Shown here piece by piece: positions 3,601-60,261 of a stretch of 64,000 nt of DNA. The notes beneath the pieces were generated by a model. That model saw nothing but the letters and a program-made list of their open reading frames with translations, was not told the DNA's origin and ran no database searches. How positions within the stretch are numbered: position 1 is the first letter of the stretch; the number at the start of each line of letters is the position of its first letter. The translations under genes were made by a program, and so were the position numbers. The DNA lies in the NCBI GenBank assembly GCA_047495785.1, contig JBLDXI010000007.1, positions 1,426,001 to 1,490,000 on the forward strand. Reading direction: 5' to 3'. The DNA comes from Lepidodermella squamata. Its lineage: Eukaryota; Animalia; Gastrotricha.

Positions 3601-4730
3601 ACGAGGTGTGGCGACCAGCTTTCCGATTTGTTAGTGGCGCCGAGTCGAATGTTTACATGGCTGATTGCGATAAATTCGGCGATGACCTCTTCGCAGTGAT
3701 GCATAAGGATGTCAAATCACCGAATCGCACTATCGATTTTTATTGGCTGAAAGACGGTACATTTTCCGCTTCATGCGAGCTTGAGCTTCAAGATTTTCCC
3801 TTCGATCGGCAAACTTGCTACTTTTCGTTTGCGTTGAATCGTGGGGCTAATTTGGTTTCGTTTCGTGACCCGATTTTTTATGTCTCATCGAACAGCTCGA
3901 ATCCAAAAAAGTGGAGTTATGAAGGCCACACCGCGATCCTATCGAAGCAGTACTACAGCAGGAAGAGGATTAGTTCGGTTTACTACGTCATAACCGTGAA
4001 AAGGAATCCAACTTACTACATACTGAACTTGGCCCTACCTTGCGCTGTATTGGTTTTCGTAGAAATCGCGTCTTTCTTACTGCCCCCTGAGATGCCGGAT
4101 AGACCAGCCTTTTCAATGTCAGTTTTACTAGCAATCATCGTGGCTGAATCAGGAGTAGCCAGTAACGTGCCCAAAACCTCGCAGCACATATTCCTAGCCG
4201 ATTATGTTGCTAGTATGAGTTGGATCAGCGCTGTTTGCACGCTGTATCAGCTGGCAGCTTGTTGCCACCAGCGAGCCATGCAGAAGCTGAACGAAGATTC
4301 CGTTTTAGACCCTCCGCGGTATTTCAGAAACAAGTTTTGCTTGATTCGTCTTTTTGATATTGTTGTGTCTTTCTTGGTTTCTTTGGTTTTCGTAGTCGTA
4401 CACGGATTTATGGGTACTTGGCCTAATAATCTCCATTAGTCATTTTACTGTTGATTTTTTCCGGTTTCTAACTAAAAACTGGGTCATCAGGCAAAATTTG
4501 ACAGATTCATCATCGTCGTGGTGAAATTCGTCAAATAAATTGTGTCAAGTTGGCTTTCCTTTTTTAATTCGGCTGATACAAATCTGATTACTCCTGAGGT
4601 GTAAATGACAGCCTGCGATCTGAAAGCCAATGCCCACAACAAAGTTGTACTTTTCAGGCGAACAAGTGACAAAAATAAAGGGAAATGGTGGCAGCGACAA
4701 GCCTGACCTGAAGGAACTATGATCTTCGAG
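695..4730. repeat. Segmental duplication, unit A (paralogous to about 13590-18260)
   Basis: Colinear similarity covers upstream sequence (ctactacg.ct.gatcacgcctcca), all exons, intron positions and the 3' flank (gtgaaattcgtc.aataaa; acaagtgacaa...gcctgacct.aggaact). Confidence 0.85.
882..4439 (+). CDS. Cys-loop ligand-gated ion channel subunit with two N-terminal L-type-lectin-like domains and a Ser/Thr stalk (copy A, about 1024 aa, 10 exons)
   Basis: Manual GT-AG model: 882-915, 975-1183, 1240-1414, 1470-1864, 1913-2101, 2164-2347, 2401-2870, 2920-3024, 3074-3179, 3232-4439. The exons total 3075 nt and stay open. Signal-like start MIRDWFGFITIVIFGC; two homologous domains (RL..SGAIW...PF.L.DFY.EV ... 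C..LGV.A...DV.SV.VW.CG); Thr-rich linker; WRP, Cys-loop CELELQDFPFDRQTC and four hydrophobic TM segments. Confidence 0.85.
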
Positions 4731-4739
4731 GTTCCTGAT

Positions 4740-5471
4740 GCACATTTTCAGGCCCGCCTAAGTTTCCTCCACGCGCGCACTCTGATTGGTCGGCCTCGCG
4801 CTCAATGAATGATAAAGGCTAACTTTCGAATTTACCGGCGGTTTTTATATCAAAATGAAATTCGTTAAATTTGGAATCGATTGAATATGGGGTTCTCGCT
4901 CGAAAAATGCAAAGCGAAAATGTTTTACGTGCATTCAAATTAATGCGCGCACGCACAAGTAACTTGTGTGCGCGCGCGTTAACGAAAATTCAGACGACAA
5001 ATTTTCATCACACGTAAAACATTTTCGCTTTACATTTTTCGAGCGAGAACCCCATATTCAATCGATTCCAAATTTAACGAATTTCATTTTGATATAAAAA
5101 CCGCCGGTAAATTCGAAAGTTAGCCTTTGTAATTGCCGCGCGCGGTTTCAAAATACTAAAAACCATGTAGAGGCACGACTTAAACTTGTGCGCGCGCAAT
5201 TCTGCAAGTCCCAACGTTTCATTAAATTTCAATTTCAAATAATCCATTCCATAACGAATTTTAGATAAGAATATTCAGTTTTTACTGCTCTGTCCAATGT
5301 GCTATCATGATCGTGGACGAATTTAATTTTAAAAATAAATTGGGGTATAATTCGGGAATTTGCTTGCTCGCGTTGTGCGCGTGCTCACACGTGTTGCGCA
5401 ATCGCACGCACAAATCGCCAGCCAATAGGAGCGCGCGCGTGGAGGAAACTTAGGCGGGCCTGAAAATGTGC
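4740..5471. mobile_element. Non-autonomous DNA transposon with 9-bp TSD (Mutator/MULE-like MITE)
   Basis: TIRs gcacattttcaggcccgcctaagtttcctccacgcgcgc ... gcgcgcgtggaggaaacttaggcgggcctgaaaatgtgc, flanked by the perfect direct repeat gttcctgat (4731-4739, 5472-5480). A related fragment lies at about 62199-62225. Confidence 0.9.
4814..5128. repeat. Long near-perfect inverted repeat (arms about 117 bp) inside the MULE-like element
   Basis: aaaggctaactttcgaatttaccggcgg...gttttacgtg (4814-4931) is mirrored by cacgtaaaac...ccgccggtaaattcgaaagttagccttt (5011-5128). Confidence 0.9.
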
Positions 5472-49640: not shown

Positions 49641-49800
49641 ACGGGTGTGGCGCGAACGCCGATACCCAAGTGAAATATTTTGCACCCGACTCCACCGATG
49701 AGGCAGAGCGCAGGGGTCAGCGGACCGCAGTGCAATGGCCCGCCTCGCCCTGGGGCGACCGACTTGCTGAGCTCGGTTCATCCCAGTGCCAGGTAAGTTT
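49641..49800 (-). ncRNA. U1: U1 spliceosomal snRNA (variant)
   Basis: 5' AAACUUACCUGGC; stem-loop II loop AUUGCAC; three-stem junction closed by a 5'/3' helix (gcact/ggtgc); terminal hairpin GGGU..GGCG-UUCG-CGCC..ACCC; about 160 nt. Confidence 0.92.
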
Positions 49801-49917
49801 AGTGGCCAAAGGTCCATGCGATCGACCCCACTCATTAGTTTCACGATAGACGGACACTCAGGTCATTTGTCTATTCCTTTTTCACGTTTGAATTTTGATG
49901 AAAAATGTCGCGACATT

Positions 49918-49989
49918 TAGCAGAGCGTAGTTTCGATCTACAGACCTCTGGGTTATGGGCCCAGCGCGCTTCCACTGCGCCACTCTGCT
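49918..49989 (-). tRNA. Initiator tRNA-Met (CAT)
   Basis: AGCAGAGTGGCGCAGTGGAAGCGCGCTGGGCCCATAACCCAGAGGTCTGTAGATCGAAACTACGCTCTGCTA. It has an A1-U72 pair, three G-C pairs in the anticodon stem and an AUCGAAA T-loop. Confidence 0.97.
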
Positions 49990-50059
49990 TGTCTGAATAT
50001 AGAATTAATCACTCGATAATTATTTTCAACTTTTTTATGAATTCAAATGAAAAAAATGA

Positions 50060-50141
50060 TGGCAGCGGTGGGGTTCGAACCCACGCCTCCGAAGAGACTA
50101 GAGCCTAAATCTAGCGCCTTAGACCACTCGGCCACGCTACC
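50060..50141 (-). tRNA. tRNA-Leu (TAG)
   Basis: GGTAGCGTGGCCGAGTGGTCTAAGGCGCTAGATTTAGGCTCTAGTCTCTTCGGAGGCGTGGGTTCGAACCCCACCGCTGCCA, with a long variable arm and a downstream T-run terminator. Confidence 0.97.
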
Positions 50142-51921: not shown

Positions 51922-52809
51922 TTAATTTTTCAAAATCACCATTAATAAACTATCTCTGAATGCTTCGTGTTCTGAGAAGGTAGGCGAACTGATCAGGATT
52001 CCACTTCGGTAATTTTCTTCCAAAAGCTTCAAATATCTGTCCGAATACTTCATAGCAACATCTTCGGTAACAAAAACTCCACCAGGCAGTAAGTGTTTGA
52101 AAGCCGTCTTCAAAACGTTGACATTAGCCTCGTAAAAATGCAAGCCATCCTCTATAATGACATTAAACTCGCCGAAATCGTCAAACAACTGTCTAATCGT
52201 CGATGTGTCAAGCTGATCGACGTAGTGAGTCGCGATTCTTGTGTCGCTAAACAAAATTTCAGTATCAACATCAGCTCCGTAGATTGAAGCGTTCGAGTAG
52301 AAATCTCGCCATGCATATAACGACGCTCCAGGTCGGCCGTTTTTACCCATATTTGACGGGATATTCGTGTTGTTTGTACCTATGCCAATCTCGAGAAGCT
52401 TGAAATGCTTGCCTTGCCATTGCTTGAGAAGGAATTCGTAGAAAATCGGGTAGTGGTGGTACCAGCATTTATCACTGCCGTGTTTATCCATCAATTTGCA
52501 AAGTTGCGATGATCTGTCGCGAAATGGCGGCTTTTCGCTCATAAAAGCGTCGATTTTAGCGCACAGAGCTGTGTTTGGACCCTTGCAGAAGTAATCAGAT
52601 CTTGGAGATTCGGTAGGTTCCATTCTTCGCAGATTTAATTTGTTGATGATGAAGTCCAATTTAGTCATGAAAACATTTGTAAGGCTGATTTCTGGTTTTA
52701 ATAAGATATTAACCACGAACAATACAGCTATCGATGACGAAGCGGTTAGAAGTTTGATTCTTTTCATAAAAACAGTATTGGTTTCCTTGCAGTTGGTGTA
52801 AAATGTCAT
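51922..52809 (-). CDS. Class I SAM-dependent methyltransferase with hydrophobic N-terminus, tandem copy 2 (single ORF)
   Basis: Same motifs as copy 1 (LLEIGIG, GADVD, IIEDGLH, LLPGGVFVTED). Hydrophobic segment SSIAVLFVVNILL. The start may be the second Met. Confidence 0.88.
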   Translation of the reverse strand: MTFYTNCKETNTVFMKRIKLLTASSSIAVLFVVNILLKPEISLTNVFMTKLDFIINKLNLRRMEPTESPRSDYFCKGPNTALCAKIDAFMSEKPPFRDRSSQLCKLMDKHGSDKCWYHHYPIFYEFLLKQWQGKHFKLLEIGIGTNNTNIPSNMGKNGRPGASLYAWRDFYSNASIYGADVDTEILFSDTRIATHYVDQLDTSTIRQLFDDFGEFNVIIEDGLHFYEANVNVLKTAFKHLLPGGVFVTEDVAMKYSDRYLKLLEENYRSGILISSPTFSEHEAFRDSLLMVILKN

Positions 52810-53609: not shown

Positions 53610-56600
53610 ATGGGAAATTGTACGGTGCAAGTAAGTTTCGCAATTATTATAGCCATCTATAGTAATAGCTTGAACGATTTGAAAGAAAACGATTGATAAA
53701 TCCTCGCCAGAATCGACTGTGACAACTGGGAAGCGAGCTGTACCAGTAATGGGGAAACCTTTATCAGAATCGTCCGGCGCCATTAGTAAGGCTCGTGTTT
53801 TCGTCAGCTATTCTTGGAGTTATCGGGAAGACGATGTTCGAAAAGTCGCAGATGAATATCTCAGCCTGCAGCTTGACTTCGATGTGTTCTTAGATATTCA
53901 TAAAATCTGTGGCGATCTCGACCAGGCGATGATTGAGGCAAGTTTTCAGTCTCTTCCAAAAAACTCGCTTTAATAAGTCCAATAATAGAAAGTCGACTGG
54001 GCTGACATCGTTGTTTGCTTCCTCTGCGAGCCATACCTTAGAGAAGGTTCTAACTCCGCTAAAGAATTCGACTATGCCATCTTCAAGAAAAAGAAAGTTC
54101 TCCTCGTCAATTTGGAAGACAACTTTGTCCAACTTGGCGAGTCTCGAAACCTGGGAAATTTACTTCGAGTGTTCTTGCGCACGGAGGCCATGCACTTCCA
54201 CGATGATGCGAATGACATTTGCCAGCAAATCCGGCTGATTCTCAAAATGCCGGCTCAAAAAGGAGTCGTTTTGAATCGATTCTACGCTTCAAACCTACCT
54301 ATAAGCATCTCGAACTATTTTGAGCGGAATGAATTAGAAGCCAAAATGATGAAACATATAATCGAAATCTGCAATAAACCAGCAAAAGGTGAGTAGTCCT
54401 ATCTCTAAGATTCAGCTTTATAACGATCCTATGTGGCTAGGCAATACCAGTCTCCTTGTTGTGGCTGGCGAGGGAGGCGTCGGCAAATCTGTTTTGATGG
54501 CGAAACTGTTAGGTAGCGAAACAATCCCAAGAGGGCTGCAATCCCCAACAGTTGTTCTATGGCTTCAGTGTTTCAAATGGCAAGAAACAACTTTCGACGA
54601 CTCAGCTAAGAAAGAATTCCGCGAAAGTCTGATAGCCCTGGCGAAAAAGGCCGCGGCGGAATTCGTTGGATCAGAACTATCGCACATCAGCGAGTATTTT
54701 CGCGATAAAAAACGGCGTCGCGTTTTAGTCGTTCTCGATGATATGTTCAACGTGGAATTGCTTCGCTTCTTTGTTCAAGAGCAATCAGAAATGTCCTGCT
54801 GTGTCATCACTCGTGACCCATTTCCAATCTTAATGCAACAGCGGCAGCTCATCTACAAATTGGAGAAGATCGATAGTCTCGCGAATGAAGCAATCGAACG
54901 ATTTCTCGAATCAACTTGCGATTTGAAAGTGAAATTGAAGGATAGCGCCAAGGAAAAGATAGCTAACCTCGCTAAAATGTGTTGTGGTTTGCCTTTGATC
55001 ATGTCTCTCGTTGCTAACCGCTTTCTCTTCGGAAATTACAACTGGGACGAGGAGTATGAAGAGATTGTCAATCAAAAGACCAACGACCTCAATACTGCTA
55101 TTACGGGTGGCGATTACCGATTCAAAGAGCAAACTGTCGACAGTCTGTTGCAGTTTTCTCTCGACAGACTTGGAGACAACTATCGGCAATGTTTCTACGC
55201 TTACTTGCTGTTTGGGCCCAACTATTTGATTTCAGTCGAACATCTAACGATGCTATGGAGTCAACTGGCACCTACCCTGAGGGCTAAAGATGTTCTTAAT
55301 GCCTTTGATCAGCGAGCTGTTATCAGAACAGTTGGGCCGGGCCATGAGCTTTCGTCTGTGCATCAGCTGCTTTGGGATGCCGGCTTTCGCCGAGCTGCTA
55401 AAGATTTCGAAATTACAGCTTCGAATGACGCCGATCTTTACGACAAAGTCCGATTGTTCCTTCTTTATAGAAAGAATGCCGATATGATGCTGTTCGAGTT
55501 TTTCAAGGGCGGAACTGGTCAAAAGCATGAACCACTTCGTCGGCAACTGCTGCGTGATATCCTGGAGACTTTGAGCTGCGATGCGTTGTTGGAAATTTGC
55601 ACATCGATAAGTAAACGCGAGGCCAAGTCTTTTATTCATTTTCTCTATGGCTTAGAATGGGACGACAATTTCAGTCGAAGACCGGACGATGACTTCAAAA
55701 TGTATGGAGTGCATCACTCCTATCGCCTGATTGAATGGATACTGGCAAGGCTGCACGGAAACCAAGCGCAGAATCAAAACTACATAAAATGCATAGCGGA
55801 GCACAATGATTTGGCTTTTCTGATGCAAATTTGGGACGACGATGACAAAGAGACGCTGAAATACGAGAGGGATAAAGTAACGAACTTCTTTTATGGGCAC
55901 CATTGGAGATATCAAGCAAGAACGTATTTGAATGCTTGCGCGATCATTAATGAAGATTCAGAGTTCATTAAAGCGGTGTTAAAGCAAGATTTCACAGCAT
56001 CGAAACTCCTTTTCAACCAAGCTGAAGCTGAGGAAGCTATGCTAATTGCCGCACTCCAAGGGTCGGCGGAAATGACAGCTTACATAATTGAGAAATCCCC
56101 CTCCACGCTTACTACAGCTTCAATATTGATTGCCGCTCAAAATGGCCACATTGAAGTAGTCCGATTACTGGCAAAAGCAGCACCAGCTTTGATTTCTACG
56201 CCGGATGACGCCGGTTATACTCCGCTACGGATAGCTGCTGCAAGCGGTCACATCGAAGTCGTTCGATTCCTGGCAAAGGCAGTGCAAGCAACGGTTCTGA
56301 CAGCTGATAACGACGGCATAACTCCGCTAATGAGTGCCGCTCAAAATGGCCACATCGAGCTAGTTCGCTTCCTGGCAAAAGAAGCACCCGCCACTGTTTC
56401 TGCGGCTGAAAACGACGGCGCAACCCCGTTATGGATTGCTGCTCAAAGTGGCCACATCGAAGTTGTTCAATTCTTAGCAAAGTTAGCACCCGTCACCGTT
56501 TCTACCCCAGATAAAAACGGTAGAACACCGATAGGTACCGCAGCTTGCAATGGACACATACAAGTTGTTCAATTCCTGGCAAAGGAAGCGCCAGCTACGA

Positions 56601-58027
56601 TTTCAATGTCTAACAACAATGGAACAACCCCCCTCTGGATGGCCGCTCAAAATGGCCACATGGATGTTGTCCGATTCCTGGCAAAGAATGGGCCAACCAC
56701 TGTTTCACTTGCTAATGATACTGGTACAACTCCGATTATGATTGCCGCTCAAAATGGTTACATCGAGGTTGTACTATTCCTAGCGAGGGAAGCACCAGCC
56801 ACAGTTTCACTGGCTGACAAAAAGGGCACAACGCCGCTACTGACGGCCGCTCAAAGTGGCCATGGTGATATCGTTCGATTTCTTTCCAAGGAAGCGCCAG
56901 CTACGATTTCAATGTCTAACAGCAATGGAACAACCCCCCTCTGGATGGCCGCTCAAAATGGCCACATTGATGTTGTCCGATTCCTGGCGAAGAATGGGCC
57001 AACCACTGTTTCACTTGCTAATGATACTGGTACAACTCCGATTATGATTGCCGCTCAAAATGGTTACATCGAGGTTGTACTATTCCTAGCGAGGGAAGCA
57101 CCAGCCACAGTTTCACTGGCTGACAAAAAGGGCACAACGCCGCTACTGACGGCCGCTCAAAGTGGCCATGGTGATATCGTTCGATTTCTTTCCAAGGAAG
57201 CGCCAGCTACGATTTCAATGTCTAACAGCAATGGAACAACCCCCCTCTGGATGGCCGCTCAAAATGGCCACATTGATGTTGTCCGATTCCTGGCGAAGAA
57301 TGGGCCAACCACTGTTTCACTTGCTAATGATACTGGTACAACTCCGATTATGATTGCCGCTCAAAATGGTTACATCGAGGTTGTACTATTCCTAGCGAGG
57401 GAAGCACCAGCCACAGTTTCACTGGCTGACAAAAAGGGCACAACGCCGCTACTGACGGCCGCTCAAAGTGGCCATGGTGATATCGTTCGATTTCTTTCCA
57501 AGGAAGCGCCAGCTACGATTTCAATGTCTAACAACAATGGAACAACCCCCCTCTGGATGGCCGCTCGAAATGGCCACGTCGATGTTGTTAGATTCCTGGC
57601 GAAGGAAGCACCAGCCACGGTTTCAATAGTTGATAATAACGGCACAACCCCTCTTTGGCTAGCCGCCTTTGATGGTCACTTGGAAGTTGTTCGATTCCTG
57701 GCAGAGAAAGCTCCTGAAAATCTTTCTATGGTTTGCGGCAGTTGTGGAACTCCGCTATGGATTGCTGCTCAAAACGGCCATCTCGAAGTTGTTGAATTCC
57801 TTGCAAAGGAAGCTCCCGCCGCAGTTTCTAAAGCTAATAGCGACGGTAGAACTCCGTTATGGACTGCCTCGTATAATGGACACATTGAAGTTGTTCGATT
57901 CCTAGCAGCAGAAGCTCCAGAAATGATTTGTGTTGCTGATAACAACGGCATCACTCCAAGTGAGATCGCTAATAATCCCGACATCGTTCATATTTTGAAG
58001 AACGCTGCCAAAACGACAGTACATTGA
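53610..58027 (+). CDS. TIR - NB-ARC (STAND NTPase) - ankyrin-repeat protein (NLR-like receptor)
   Basis: Exons 53610-53630, 53686-53937, 53989-54388, 54441-58027. TIR: VFVSYSW, VFLD, ADIVVCFL, SNSAKEF. NB-ARC: Walker A GEGGVGKS, Walker B VLVVLDDM, VITR, CCGLPL, VHQLL. About 19 ankyrin repeats (TPLWMAAQNGH). Confidence 0.92.
56582..57600 (+). repeat. Coding tandem repeat, 306-bp period (three ankyrin repeats), about 3.3 near-identical copies
   Basis: aaggaagcgccagctacgatttcaatgtc starts at 56582, 56888, 57194 and 57500. Only a few substitutions separate the units. Confidence 0.95.
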
Positions 58028-58689
58028 ATTAAAAAATTTATTAACTATCACTTTGAGGACATTCTTTGACGCCATTTGATGACTCAATCAGAGAAAATTT
58101 CGAATCGAACGGAAAACTTCTTCAGTTAACTTTTTTTAGTAAATGAGAAACTGCCATTAGTGACTAACGTCTTATCTGAACCTTTGGCAGAACCTCGTAT
58201 ATTTTCTATGAATGACTCAACAACCAGCTGACATCGTTGACAACTCAAATGCTGAAGTTCGGATGTTTATGTCAGTGTTGAAGTGAAAGGCGGCAGACGG
58301 CAGTTACATGTAAAAAAAGTAATCATTTATTGACGATTTGCAAAACCAACTCGTTTATCTACTGTTTCAGCTCCGATAACGGCATTTCATTCCAGTGAAC
58401 GCAGCAAAGAGTCTTGAGAGTTTCTATGACAACAGTTGAATAGAGTAAATCGATTGATAAGTCAACAATGTGTTGCTCTATGTTCAAAAATTGCCTGCCA
58501 AATCAGGAAATTAAACCACCCTTTGATTGTAGGCAAATATCTACTAGTCTCATAAATAATTCACTTTGAAAAGCTGTAAAATATGGTTCGATATAACCGA
58601 GCCTCCTGGGAGACTAAAAATTATCGAACGGTATCAGCACACATTCCTCTGAATGAATTATCGACACACTGAAAGCGTCTGACTAAACT

Positions 58690-60261
58690 ATGAAGCAATA
58701 TTTTACAATATTAATAACACTTATTTCAGGATTAACCTGGAATATTTTAGTTGGATGCGATTTAGATTCAAGTAAACAAACAAAAGCGTTGATGGAGGAA
58801 TTGCAGAAGGAGTACGTCTACAAATGGTGCCCGGTCGTGATGTCTCGAAGCGTCCCGAGCGAAACGGTGGCCAGGAATAACTTCACCCAGGCACTTCGTG
58901 TCAAAACAGCCGCTTACATTTTCCGCTTCATTCAAATCAACGACGTCGAGCAGCGAATGTCCCTTTTTCTCTACTTCACCTTTGAATGGGCGTTTCCTTG
59001 TCCAGTCTACGATTGTAACAAAATCGTACCAGATTCGCCGTTGTGCAAATTGCCGAAAGATCGGGTTCAAAGTTTATACTTTCTCCTAACGCCTCGAGAC
59101 GTCTGGCACCCCTACTTGGCCCATCTCAACGCTTATGAAACGACTCGGCCGTTGGAAAATGGAGCTGATGGAGATATCGTGTTCATCTTCCCATTCATGG
59201 CATCTGGACCTCAGGCTTACATCGGTTACACCCGGCGAATCGACACGTCTTGCTCGTCATTTTCATTTAAACACTTTCCATTCGACACGCTGACTTGCGA
59301 AATGAAGTTTGAACCCGAGGAGAGTATTGACTTCCTTTGGTATGATGTCGTATTTTATGGGATGGATGCGTCTCTAAGTACGAATCTGATAAGCGATACC
59401 GATGTTTGGGAACTGGCGTATTCTGACGATTTAGGTCGGACTTCTACGGGGGAGAGTCTGAATGCTTCCGAGTCAACGGGCGTCTTTTCGCGTATGGTTT
59501 TAACGAGTCGATTCAGGCGTAAATACAACTACTACGTCGCGAGTATGATGATTCCGTCTTATGCCACCTTCTTCTTACAAATCACGTGCCTATTCTTACC
59601 ACCCGAATTTCCAGACAGGTAAAATTTTAAAGAAAGTACTGCCAATAATTTTAAAGGCAAATGTGAAAAGTTGTTAGCAAAAGTAATAGGTATAGTTAAA
59701 TTTATTCGTCACAAACCGATAAAAATTTCCAGCTACAAAATAAATAATTTCTATTTCGAAATTATTTCAGCCTCCTGATCTTATTAATCAAATACCTCTT
59801 TTGAATATTTCTCCTGACTCGAGATGCTAATTAGCCAAGATTCGTTATATTATCGAATTATCTCCAGTCATGGATTCTTTCTTCACTTCTTGAATCTTTA
59901 TAAAATCTTAAAAAAGTTGTAATTTCAACTTTCCAGACCATCATTCGCGATGACAGCAGTTTTAGCGAATTCGGTTCTGCTTTCGCTGGTTTTCTCCAGC
60001 ATTCCACCAACTTCGGAAACTGTCTACTTCGTAACAATGGTCATTATCAAGTTCGTCGCTGGTCTCGTCATAACAATGTACACACTGCTGACGGTGCCTC
60101 TAGCCGGCTGGTTGAAAGGCGGCCAACTGATTTCGATCGGCACGTGGCATCTCACCCGAATTCGATTTGCGGATATCGTGCTAGGAATAGCCATACTTAT
60201 ACTGGGTCTAATAACTGATGTTGTTTACTTTTGTAGATTGAGAAATGAACCTAGGAATTGA
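58690..60261 (+). CDS. Divergent Cys-loop ligand-gated ion channel subunit (2 exons)
   Basis: Signal MKQYFTILITLISGL; VWHPYL; Cys-loop CSSFSFKHFPFDTLTC; RRKYNYYV-M1; PPEFPDR|PSFAMTAVLA across an intron at about 59619-59936; M3; short loop; M4. Confidence 0.9.

Follow-up and report, generated by a model that had tools for sequence, protein, structure and literature searches.

A 64,000-nucleotide stretch of the genome of the gastrotrich Lepidodermella squamata (GenBank assembly GCA_047495785.1, contig JBLDXI010000007.1, positions 1,426,001 to 1,490,000; hereafter the window) carries, at 53610-58027 on the forward (+) strand, a gene whose product has a divergent head of the TIR fold, followed by a complete NB-ARC ATPase module and a rapidly changing array of ankyrin repeats. 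Our script-built model of this receptor gene contains four exons and gives a product of 1419 residues with no internal stops. The gene is intact and under purifying selection, and we consider that it probably encodes a functional cytosolic switch protein of the STAND type, belonging to a lineage-specific family of TIR-NB-ARC-ankyrin proteins. No further copies of the receptor gene are found within the 64-kb window. All coordinates given below are positions of the window, and all features of the receptor gene lie on the (+) strand.

Domain architecture of the receptor

The NB-ARC module, with its nucleotide-binding, helical and winged-helix parts, is located at 54443-55447, as supported by the Pfam NB-ARC domain, the motif columns and an AlphaFold model. 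An earlier reading of the locus from the letters of the sequence (the original prediction) had named a P-loop, a Walker B motif, GLPL and a VHQ equivalent to MHD, and all of these are present: GEGGVGKS (P-loop; residues 234-241, 54467-54490), LVVLDD (Walker B; residues 320-325, 54725-54742), GLPL (residues 407-410, 54986-54997) and VHQ (residues 531-533, 55358-55366), together with VITRD as sensor I (residues ~346-350). At the MHD position the His is kept and the Asp is replaced by Gln. The match to Pfam NB-ARC (PF00931) covers exon-4 residues 4-209 with 37.5 bits against a cut-off of 23.5, and all five motifs share alignment columns with a plant NLR, bacterial NB-ARC proteins and Trichinella Apaf-1. 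When exon-4 residues 1-520 were modelled with AlphaFold (pLDDT 75.3, pTM 0.75), the best Foldseek match was closed murine Apaf-1 (E 1.8e-10, TM-score by query 0.51), and further matches include the NB-ARC of tomato NRC1 (TM-score by target 0.68), CED-4, ZAR1, RPP1, ROQ1 and WRR4A. A word-index protein search with the NB-ARC part gave no match, and neither CARD nor WD40 was matched in the Pfam scan of the receptor gene.

The head in front of this module is very divergent, and its assignment to the TIR domains rests on three linked results. One is a hidden Markov model (HMM) for which the heads of L001, L003 and P0011, three relatives, were the sole input (spliced by script where needed); it gives the window head 26.2 bits, a score reached by none of 2000 shuffles (best 10.6). 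Another comes from P0011, whose head is above the Pfam TIR_2 (PF13676) cut-off (31.4 against 28); its AlphaFold model (pLDDT 73) resembles the TIR domains of SARM1, SPARTA TIR-APAZ and RPS4 (TM-score by query 0.55-0.62), and also matches the related glycosidases MilB, BcmB and DNPH1. The last is the alignment by hhalign of the four-member family profile to bacterial TIR_2, with 85% probability (P 5.9e-6) over 88 columns that include strands A-D and the aligned Glu. Because of these three results together, we read the receptor head as a TIR domain.

Within this putative TIR domain, the proposal that SNSAKEF stands at the SxWCxxE position with a retained Glu agrees with our alignments. SNSAKEF occupies residues 112-118; the S, W and C of the classical motif are not retained, and Glu117 (codon 54064-54066) falls at the position of the TIR catalytic glutamate. 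It is invariant across four family members that share 17-21% identity in the region, and aligns with the invariant Glu of bacterial TIR_2 references. A three-sequence alignment (A3) with a misplaced Glu was discarded.

Other searches with the head returned less. The four-sequence profile gave only weak matches in the PDB (YtoQ, E 0.06; Cat1 TIR, E 0.77), and phmmer searches of the PDB with the separate TIR exons gave no match. Two weak, independent pointers agree with the TIR reading: exon 2 faintly matched PADLOC bSEFIR (E 8e-4) as well as ThcB4 of Thoeris III in NCBIfam (E 4e-3), and for exon 3 the nearest named atlas clusters by features are bacterial TIR_2 (0.89; a lead only). A word-index protein search with exon 3 gave no match; the same type of search started from a bacterial TIR recovered only six close relatives. 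A small bacterial TIR_2 HMM scored the spliced head at 4.2 bits, which was equalled by 4 of 500 shuffles and is not significant alone.

The ankyrin array (56015-58024; Pfam Ank_2 E 7e-185) comprises ~20 repeats of 34 residues, close to the number of about 19 given previously: 18 TP[LIS] repeat cores follow each other at exact 34-residue spacing over residues 812-1419, and two degenerate repeats stand in front of them. The C-terminus of the receptor consists of ankyrin repeats only, with no LRR or C-JID sensor. Inter-repeat variation is highest at ankyrin positions 3, 4, 10, 11 and 34, which correspond to the tip of the hairpin and the beginning of helix 1, the usual binding face of such repeats. 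We also found three tandem 306-nt units, each made of three ankyrin repeats, at 56609-57526 (Tandem Repeats Finder: 306 nt x 3.4 copies, 97% matches). Units 2 and 3 (56915-57526) are 100% identical in DNA, and unit 1 differs from both at 3 bases, which points to duplication or conversion in the very recent past, or else to an assembly artefact through collapse or expansion.

Gene structure and selection

The exon-4 region is covered by a large open frame (54389-58027) that is preceded by three short exons. Exon 1 (53610-53630) is the predicted first coding micro-exon, and is followed by intron 1 (53631-53685; 55 nt, GT-AG). Exon 2 (53686-53937) encodes a Ser/Thr-rich linker (residues 8-42) and then the N-terminal half of the TIR domain, which starts from ARVFVSY at residue 43. 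Intron 2 (53938-53988; 51 nt, GC-AG, with the donor GCAAGT) interrupts the TIR head, and reading through it meets stop codons. Exon 3 (53989-54388) contributes the C-terminal TIR half and the linker to the NB-ARC module. Intron 3 (54389-54440; 52 nt, GT-AG) is in phase 1, and exon 4 (54441-58027) runs from the NB-ARC module through a helical region and the ankyrin array to the stop codon. Directly behind this codon, the sequence reads ATTAAA (58028-58033), which may be a poly(A) signal.

The joins between the TIR exons and the NB-ARC exon are well supported by comparison with relatives. The GC-AG intron of the window gene has counterparts of the GT-AG type in two distant relatives from metagenome contigs (L003 and L001), where they interrupt the TIR domain at exactly the same codon. 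Moreover, splicing of intron 3 restores a KPxKG motif, KPAKG, directly before the P-loop strand; the codon of Gly225 straddles this junction, and P0037, P0007 and P0011, all with uninterrupted frames, keep the residue. Since the position of intron 2 is common to relatives and Gly225 is kept, it is unlikely that the TIR exons are not spliced to the NB-ARC exon, a doubt that had been raised together with the original prediction.

The only public run in which we found the locus, X1, has contigs that pass straight through all three introns with no splice joints, and thus behaves like genomic DNA, from a second haplotype or a close copy. The contig crossing intron 2 has an identical GC donor, and in intron 1 X1 shows a 1-nt insertion (53652) and a single-nucleotide polymorphism (53666), which fits non-coding DNA. 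In total, X1 differs from the window by 38 single-base differences and one 1-nt insertion. Five of the single-base differences are non-coding and 33 are coding (21 synonymous and 12 non-synonymous), and 24 of the 33 coding changes occur at codon position 3. The resulting ratio of non-synonymous to synonymous polymorphism (pN/pS) is 0.16 (binomial P 2.5e-7, tested against the share that non-synonymous sites would have under neutrality). Within the TIR core (residues 43-190) all changes are synonymous, and most replacements are found in the linkers.

Relatives of the receptor

The NB-ARC part was used in an exhaustive HMMER scan against 1.84 billion cluster representatives; only 36 proteins were recovered at E <= 0.001, the best with E 7.7e-19 and 25% identity. 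The top seven relatives are all metagenome proteins from ENA, six of the seven with an NB-ARC domain and most with ankyrin repeats. The contigs of five of these top relatives have short introns and animal-type neighbours (chitin-binding, G-alpha and kinase genes). More distant relatives of the NB-ARC part include plant NLRs, Trichinella Apaf-1 and bacterial proteins in which NB-ARC is combined with TIR, trypsin or Mrr.

A TIR head is present in the relatives L001, L003 and L007. The close NB-ARC-ankyrin relative L002 (3758-5949), in turn, has a helical, non-TIR N-terminal exon, and heads therefore seem to have been swapped within the family. On the metagenome contig L006, two NB-ARC(-ankyrin) genes of the family stand in tandem (690-1706 and 3794-4783), so that such relatives appear to be clustered in other organisms too.

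The N-terminus and the proposed lipid anchor

The micro-exon described in the original prediction is found in the sequence: the ATG at 53610 is in the context ccaccATGG, the exon encodes MGNCTVQ with Gly2 and Cys4, and it is directly followed by a GTAAGT donor, giving a phase 0 join. The exon-2 reading frame opens exactly at the acceptor of intron 1 (53685/53686), in frame with the micro-exon. The upstream neighbour gene is on the opposite strand at a distance of ~800 nt, and the micro-exon thus sits where a first exon would be expected. In 5000 shuffles of the upstream 400 nt, an ATG exon with a strong donor and an in-frame join arose in 5.3%, and in 0.9% when a Kozak-like context was also required. 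Judging from these sequence features, use of the MGNC micro-exon in the mRNA seems slightly favoured.

The lipid anchor proposed for this N-terminus stands on weaker ground than the motif itself, which is indeed in the sequence. Position 6 of MGNCTVQ is Val, which falls outside the usual N-myristoyltransferase pattern (S, T, A, G, C or N). This usual N-myristoylation pattern, with a small uncharged residue at position 6 (PROSITE PS00008), is leaky, and the mismatch hence lowers the claim and does not exclude it. An alternative start at Met29 (53749-53751), which would be the first ATG of an mRNA lacking the micro-exon, begins MGKPLSE and has a Gly2 as well. As read from the motif, dual acylation of the N-terminus is therefore rather doubtful, also considering the N-termini of the relatives described below.

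Alternative readings of the locus

Several points weigh against our reading of the gene as a functional receptor with a TIR head and an MGNC start. Pfam scans of the two TIR exons separately gave no TIR match, the comparison of the spliced head by itself with a few bacterial TIR_2 references reached no better than P 0.011, and the TIR fold was modelled on the relative P0011. Four positions before the Glu, where well-studied NADase TIRs have an aromatic residue, stands Asn113, and the basic pair after strand A is replaced by Ser50-Trp51. The MGNC start is absent in three relatives, which begin with MATTTT (L003), MLMDSY (L001) and MDDTVV (P0011). Among public runs, no RNA run containing the receptor gene was found.

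Two alternatives concern how the protein begins and what its head does. The protein may start at Met29 (ATG 53749), the MGNC micro-exon being non-coding, for example because a spliced leader is joined at 53685/53686 or transcription starts downstream of 53610; spliced-leader trans-splicing occurs in bdelloid rotifers. Without the Cys4 palmitoylation site, such a product would be soluble, or its lipid modification would be limited to myristoylation on a different Gly2. The context of Met29 is a purine at -3 and G at +4, and the N-termini of the relatives are short and lack MG. From the acceptor to Met29 there are 21 codons, which contain both non-synonymous changes of exon 2 between X1 and the window, and evolve like a linker or an untranslated region with no visible constraint; the chance rate of the micro-exon pattern, as obtained from the shuffles, is also not negligible. 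However, the start at Met29 would require that ccaccATGG, the perfect GTAAGT, the in-phase join and a 55-nt intron resembling those of 51 and 52 nt are all coincidences, as well as an exon-2 frame that is open exactly from the acceptor, and we regard this start as a serious possibility that falls somewhat short of the start at MGNC. The retained Glu does not guarantee NADase activity. SARM1 and plant TIRs have a Trp four residues before the Glu. In the family this position varies (Arg, His or Leu in relatives, beside the Asn of the window head), and it is Phe or Tyr in bacterial references. Where the window head has Ser-Trp after strand A, SARM1 has R569/R570 (bioRxiv 10.64898/2026.09.21.753143), and several animal STAND proteins have TIR-like heads that were inactive in vitro in spite of a retained Glu (bioRxiv 10.64898/2026.09.21.753143). 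The view that a TIR with this Glu is an NADase thus holds for the residue itself, Glu117 being kept, and less so for the activity, because the Glu is the only one of the NADase-typical residues that remains. The head could then be a non-enzymatic platform for homotypic TIR-TIR assembly, as in TLR and MyD88 adaptors, with a structural role for the conserved Glu. Against this, the Glu is invariant among members of such low identity, and the P0011 model has its nearest matches in the NADase TIRs of SARM1 and SPARTA and in the MilB/DNPH1 glycosidases rather than in TLR TIRs; we therefore take a scaffolding head as possible, with the balance tilted against it.

The remaining two alternatives, on the origin and state of the gene, find less in their favour. 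Bacterial TIR_2-NB-ARC proteins (P0033 and P0034) are among the 36 detectable relatives, and the nearest named feature-space clusters of the TIR half are bacterial, which would accord with a recent horizontal acquisition of a bacterial TIR-STAND defence gene. However, the bacterial matches are weak (E ~1e-4 to 1e-3, 24-26% identity), the best matches are intron-bearing genes on eukaryote-like contigs beside animal-type genes, the window gene itself has three spliceosomal introns with one at a position common to relatives, and neither plasmids (tblastn with the separate TIR exons) nor PADLOC, apart from the weak bSEFIR match of exon 2, gave a match. A recent bacterial donor was hence rejected as the principal explanation and seems very unlikely. 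The locus might instead be an unexpressed or decaying paralogue of the family, considering that no RNA run was found to carry it and that two ankyrin units are identical in DNA, possibly through an assembly artefact. But an unbroken frame of 1419 codons, a full set of NB-ARC motifs and the low pN/pS reported above make decay distinctly unlikely. A functional STAND-type switch protein of a lineage-specific family thus remains our preferred reading of the gene.

Proposed mechanism and significance

A possible mechanism may be drawn from the way Apaf-1 and plant TIR-NLRs work. Before a ligand binds, the ankyrin array would keep the NB-ARC module closed, in an ADP-type state; binding would then lead to nucleotide exchange and oligomerisation, by which the TIR heads would be brought together. 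The assembled heads may signal either by cleavage of NAD+ through Glu117 or as TIR-TIR scaffolds. In its resting state the protein may in addition be anchored to a membrane by the N-terminal MGNC, in the manner of acylated plant CNLs (NLRs with coiled-coil heads); this is the least secure step. An immune or cell-death role would be the most likely use of the receptor. The original prediction of a resistosome-like immune or allorecognition receptor is in these terms a reasonable reading as far as a STAND receptor that signals by induced proximity is concerned, given that the architecture and the Glu hold up. A fuller form of this reading, a dually acylated and membrane-tethered TIR-NB-ARC-ankyrin receptor that binds a ligand through its ankyrin repeats, forms a resistosome-like oligomer at the membrane and cleaves NAD+ via Glu117, is unlikely to hold in all of its parts.

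Effector-triggered immunity in plants, and many antiphage systems in bacteria, are built around STAND receptors whose TIR heads are enzymes. In animals, the known examples of enzymatic TIRs are SARM1, which does not belong to the STAND proteins, and the TeTIR-NACHT proteins described very recently. If a small invertebrate had a large, fast-evolving family of TIR-NB-ARC-ankyrin proteins, this would show that a build of the plant type arose or survived in animals too, and would offer a tractable case in which to ask whether NAD-derived signals operate there. The specific addition of the window gene, as suggested by its predicted N-terminus, would be the idea of membrane tethering by acylation; if this were true, an acylated, NAD-cleaving animal receptor would be a convergent counterpart of plant TNLs (TIR-NLRs) and of acylated plant CNLs.

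Neighbouring features in the window

Upstream of the receptor gene, a U1 small nuclear RNA gene (102 bits) is found at 49641-50141 (-), adjoining two tRNA genes. An intronless, bacterial-looking open frame of 295 residues lies at 51922-52809 (-), divergent from the receptor gene and 800 nt away from it; it shows a weak match to Methyltransf_24 (E 1e-3) that is under the cut-off. Directly downstream of the receptor gene, an exon at 58690-59622 (+) encodes the ligand-binding domain of a Cys-loop (neurotransmitter-gated) channel.

Comparison with known systems

The plant TNLs, such as RPP1, ROQ1 and RPS4, share with the window receptor the order of a TIR domain, an NB-ARC module and a C-terminal repeat sensor. 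The NB-ARC motifs, including the His of MHD, and the Glu at the catalytic position are also common to both, and the structural model of the NB-ARC part matches RPP1, ROQ1 and WRR4A. However, the sensor of plant TNLs is built from LRR plus C-JID and not from an ankyrin array, the NB-ARC module is only ~22% identical to a plant NB-ARC, and the window head is of the TIR_2 type without the Trp and Cys of SxWCxxE. Moreover, the receptor is encoded in an animal genome, where no EDS1-type pathway is known.

Apaf-1, CED-4 and Dark provide the best structural matches of the NB-ARC model, which is like the closed, ADP-bound form, and Trichinella Apaf-1 is among the sequence matches. These proteins differ from the window receptor in having a CARD head and, in Apaf-1, WD40 propellers, and in being single-copy, whereas here a TIR head and an ankyrin array occur in a multi-copy, lineage-specific family. 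Literature searches on rotifers with NB-ARC or TIR/NOD-like terms gave no title or abstract pointing to a TIR-NB-ARC-ankyrin family. Fungal NLRs with NB-ARC or NACHT were reportedly described by Dyrka and co-workers (Dyrka et al. 2014) as carrying ankyrin, TPR or WD40 repeats that are internally conserved. They resemble the window receptor in combining a STAND ATPase with highly similar, recently duplicated repeats, but belong to a different kingdom.

The acylated plant CNLs (RPS5, PML5, L3, L5 and SUMM2) have a Gly2 and a nearby Cys on a STAND immune receptor, as in the predicted MGNC. In RPS5, PML5, L3 and L5 these Gly2/Cys acylation sites are functionally required, and such sites are needed for membrane localisation and cell death (PMC11467418). 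In contrast to the TIR head of the window receptor, however, the heads of these CNLs are coiled coils acting at membranes, and the motif predicted here is the one that is missing from three relatives.

Among animals, an amphioxus TIR-NB-ARC protein was described in 2007 as a member of the Apaf-1 family with a TIR in place of CARD, and was likened to plant R genes (PMC2246300). The amphioxus repertoire, which we compared by description only, has WD40, TPR or no repeats, and ankyrin repeats are unmentioned (Zmasek et al. 2007, PMC2246300). Placozoan NB-ARC proteins likewise have WD40 or TPR repeats. The TeTIR-NACHT proteins described in 2026 (TEP1, NWD1, NWD2, TTC41 and NPHP3) have animal NADase TIR-like heads, and the TeTIR of TEP1 is an NADase that kills cells on over-expression (bioRxiv 10.64898/2026.09.21.753143). 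They resemble the window receptor in that they are animal STAND proteins whose TIR-like head, with a catalytic Glu that is conserved, stands right in front of the ATPase and whose sensors are made of repeats, but differ in their NACHT ATPase, in their WD40 or TPR sensors and in the extended fold of their head, which has an RWG loop. We rejected a TeTIR identity of the window head, because the RWG loop was not seen and the ATPase is NB-ARC. The original prediction regarded TIR-NB-ARC as typical of plants; the build of the receptor is indeed plant-like, but it is not unique to plants, as the amphioxus protein of 2007 (PMC2246300) and the TIR-like heads on animal NACHT STAND proteins of 2026 both indicate.

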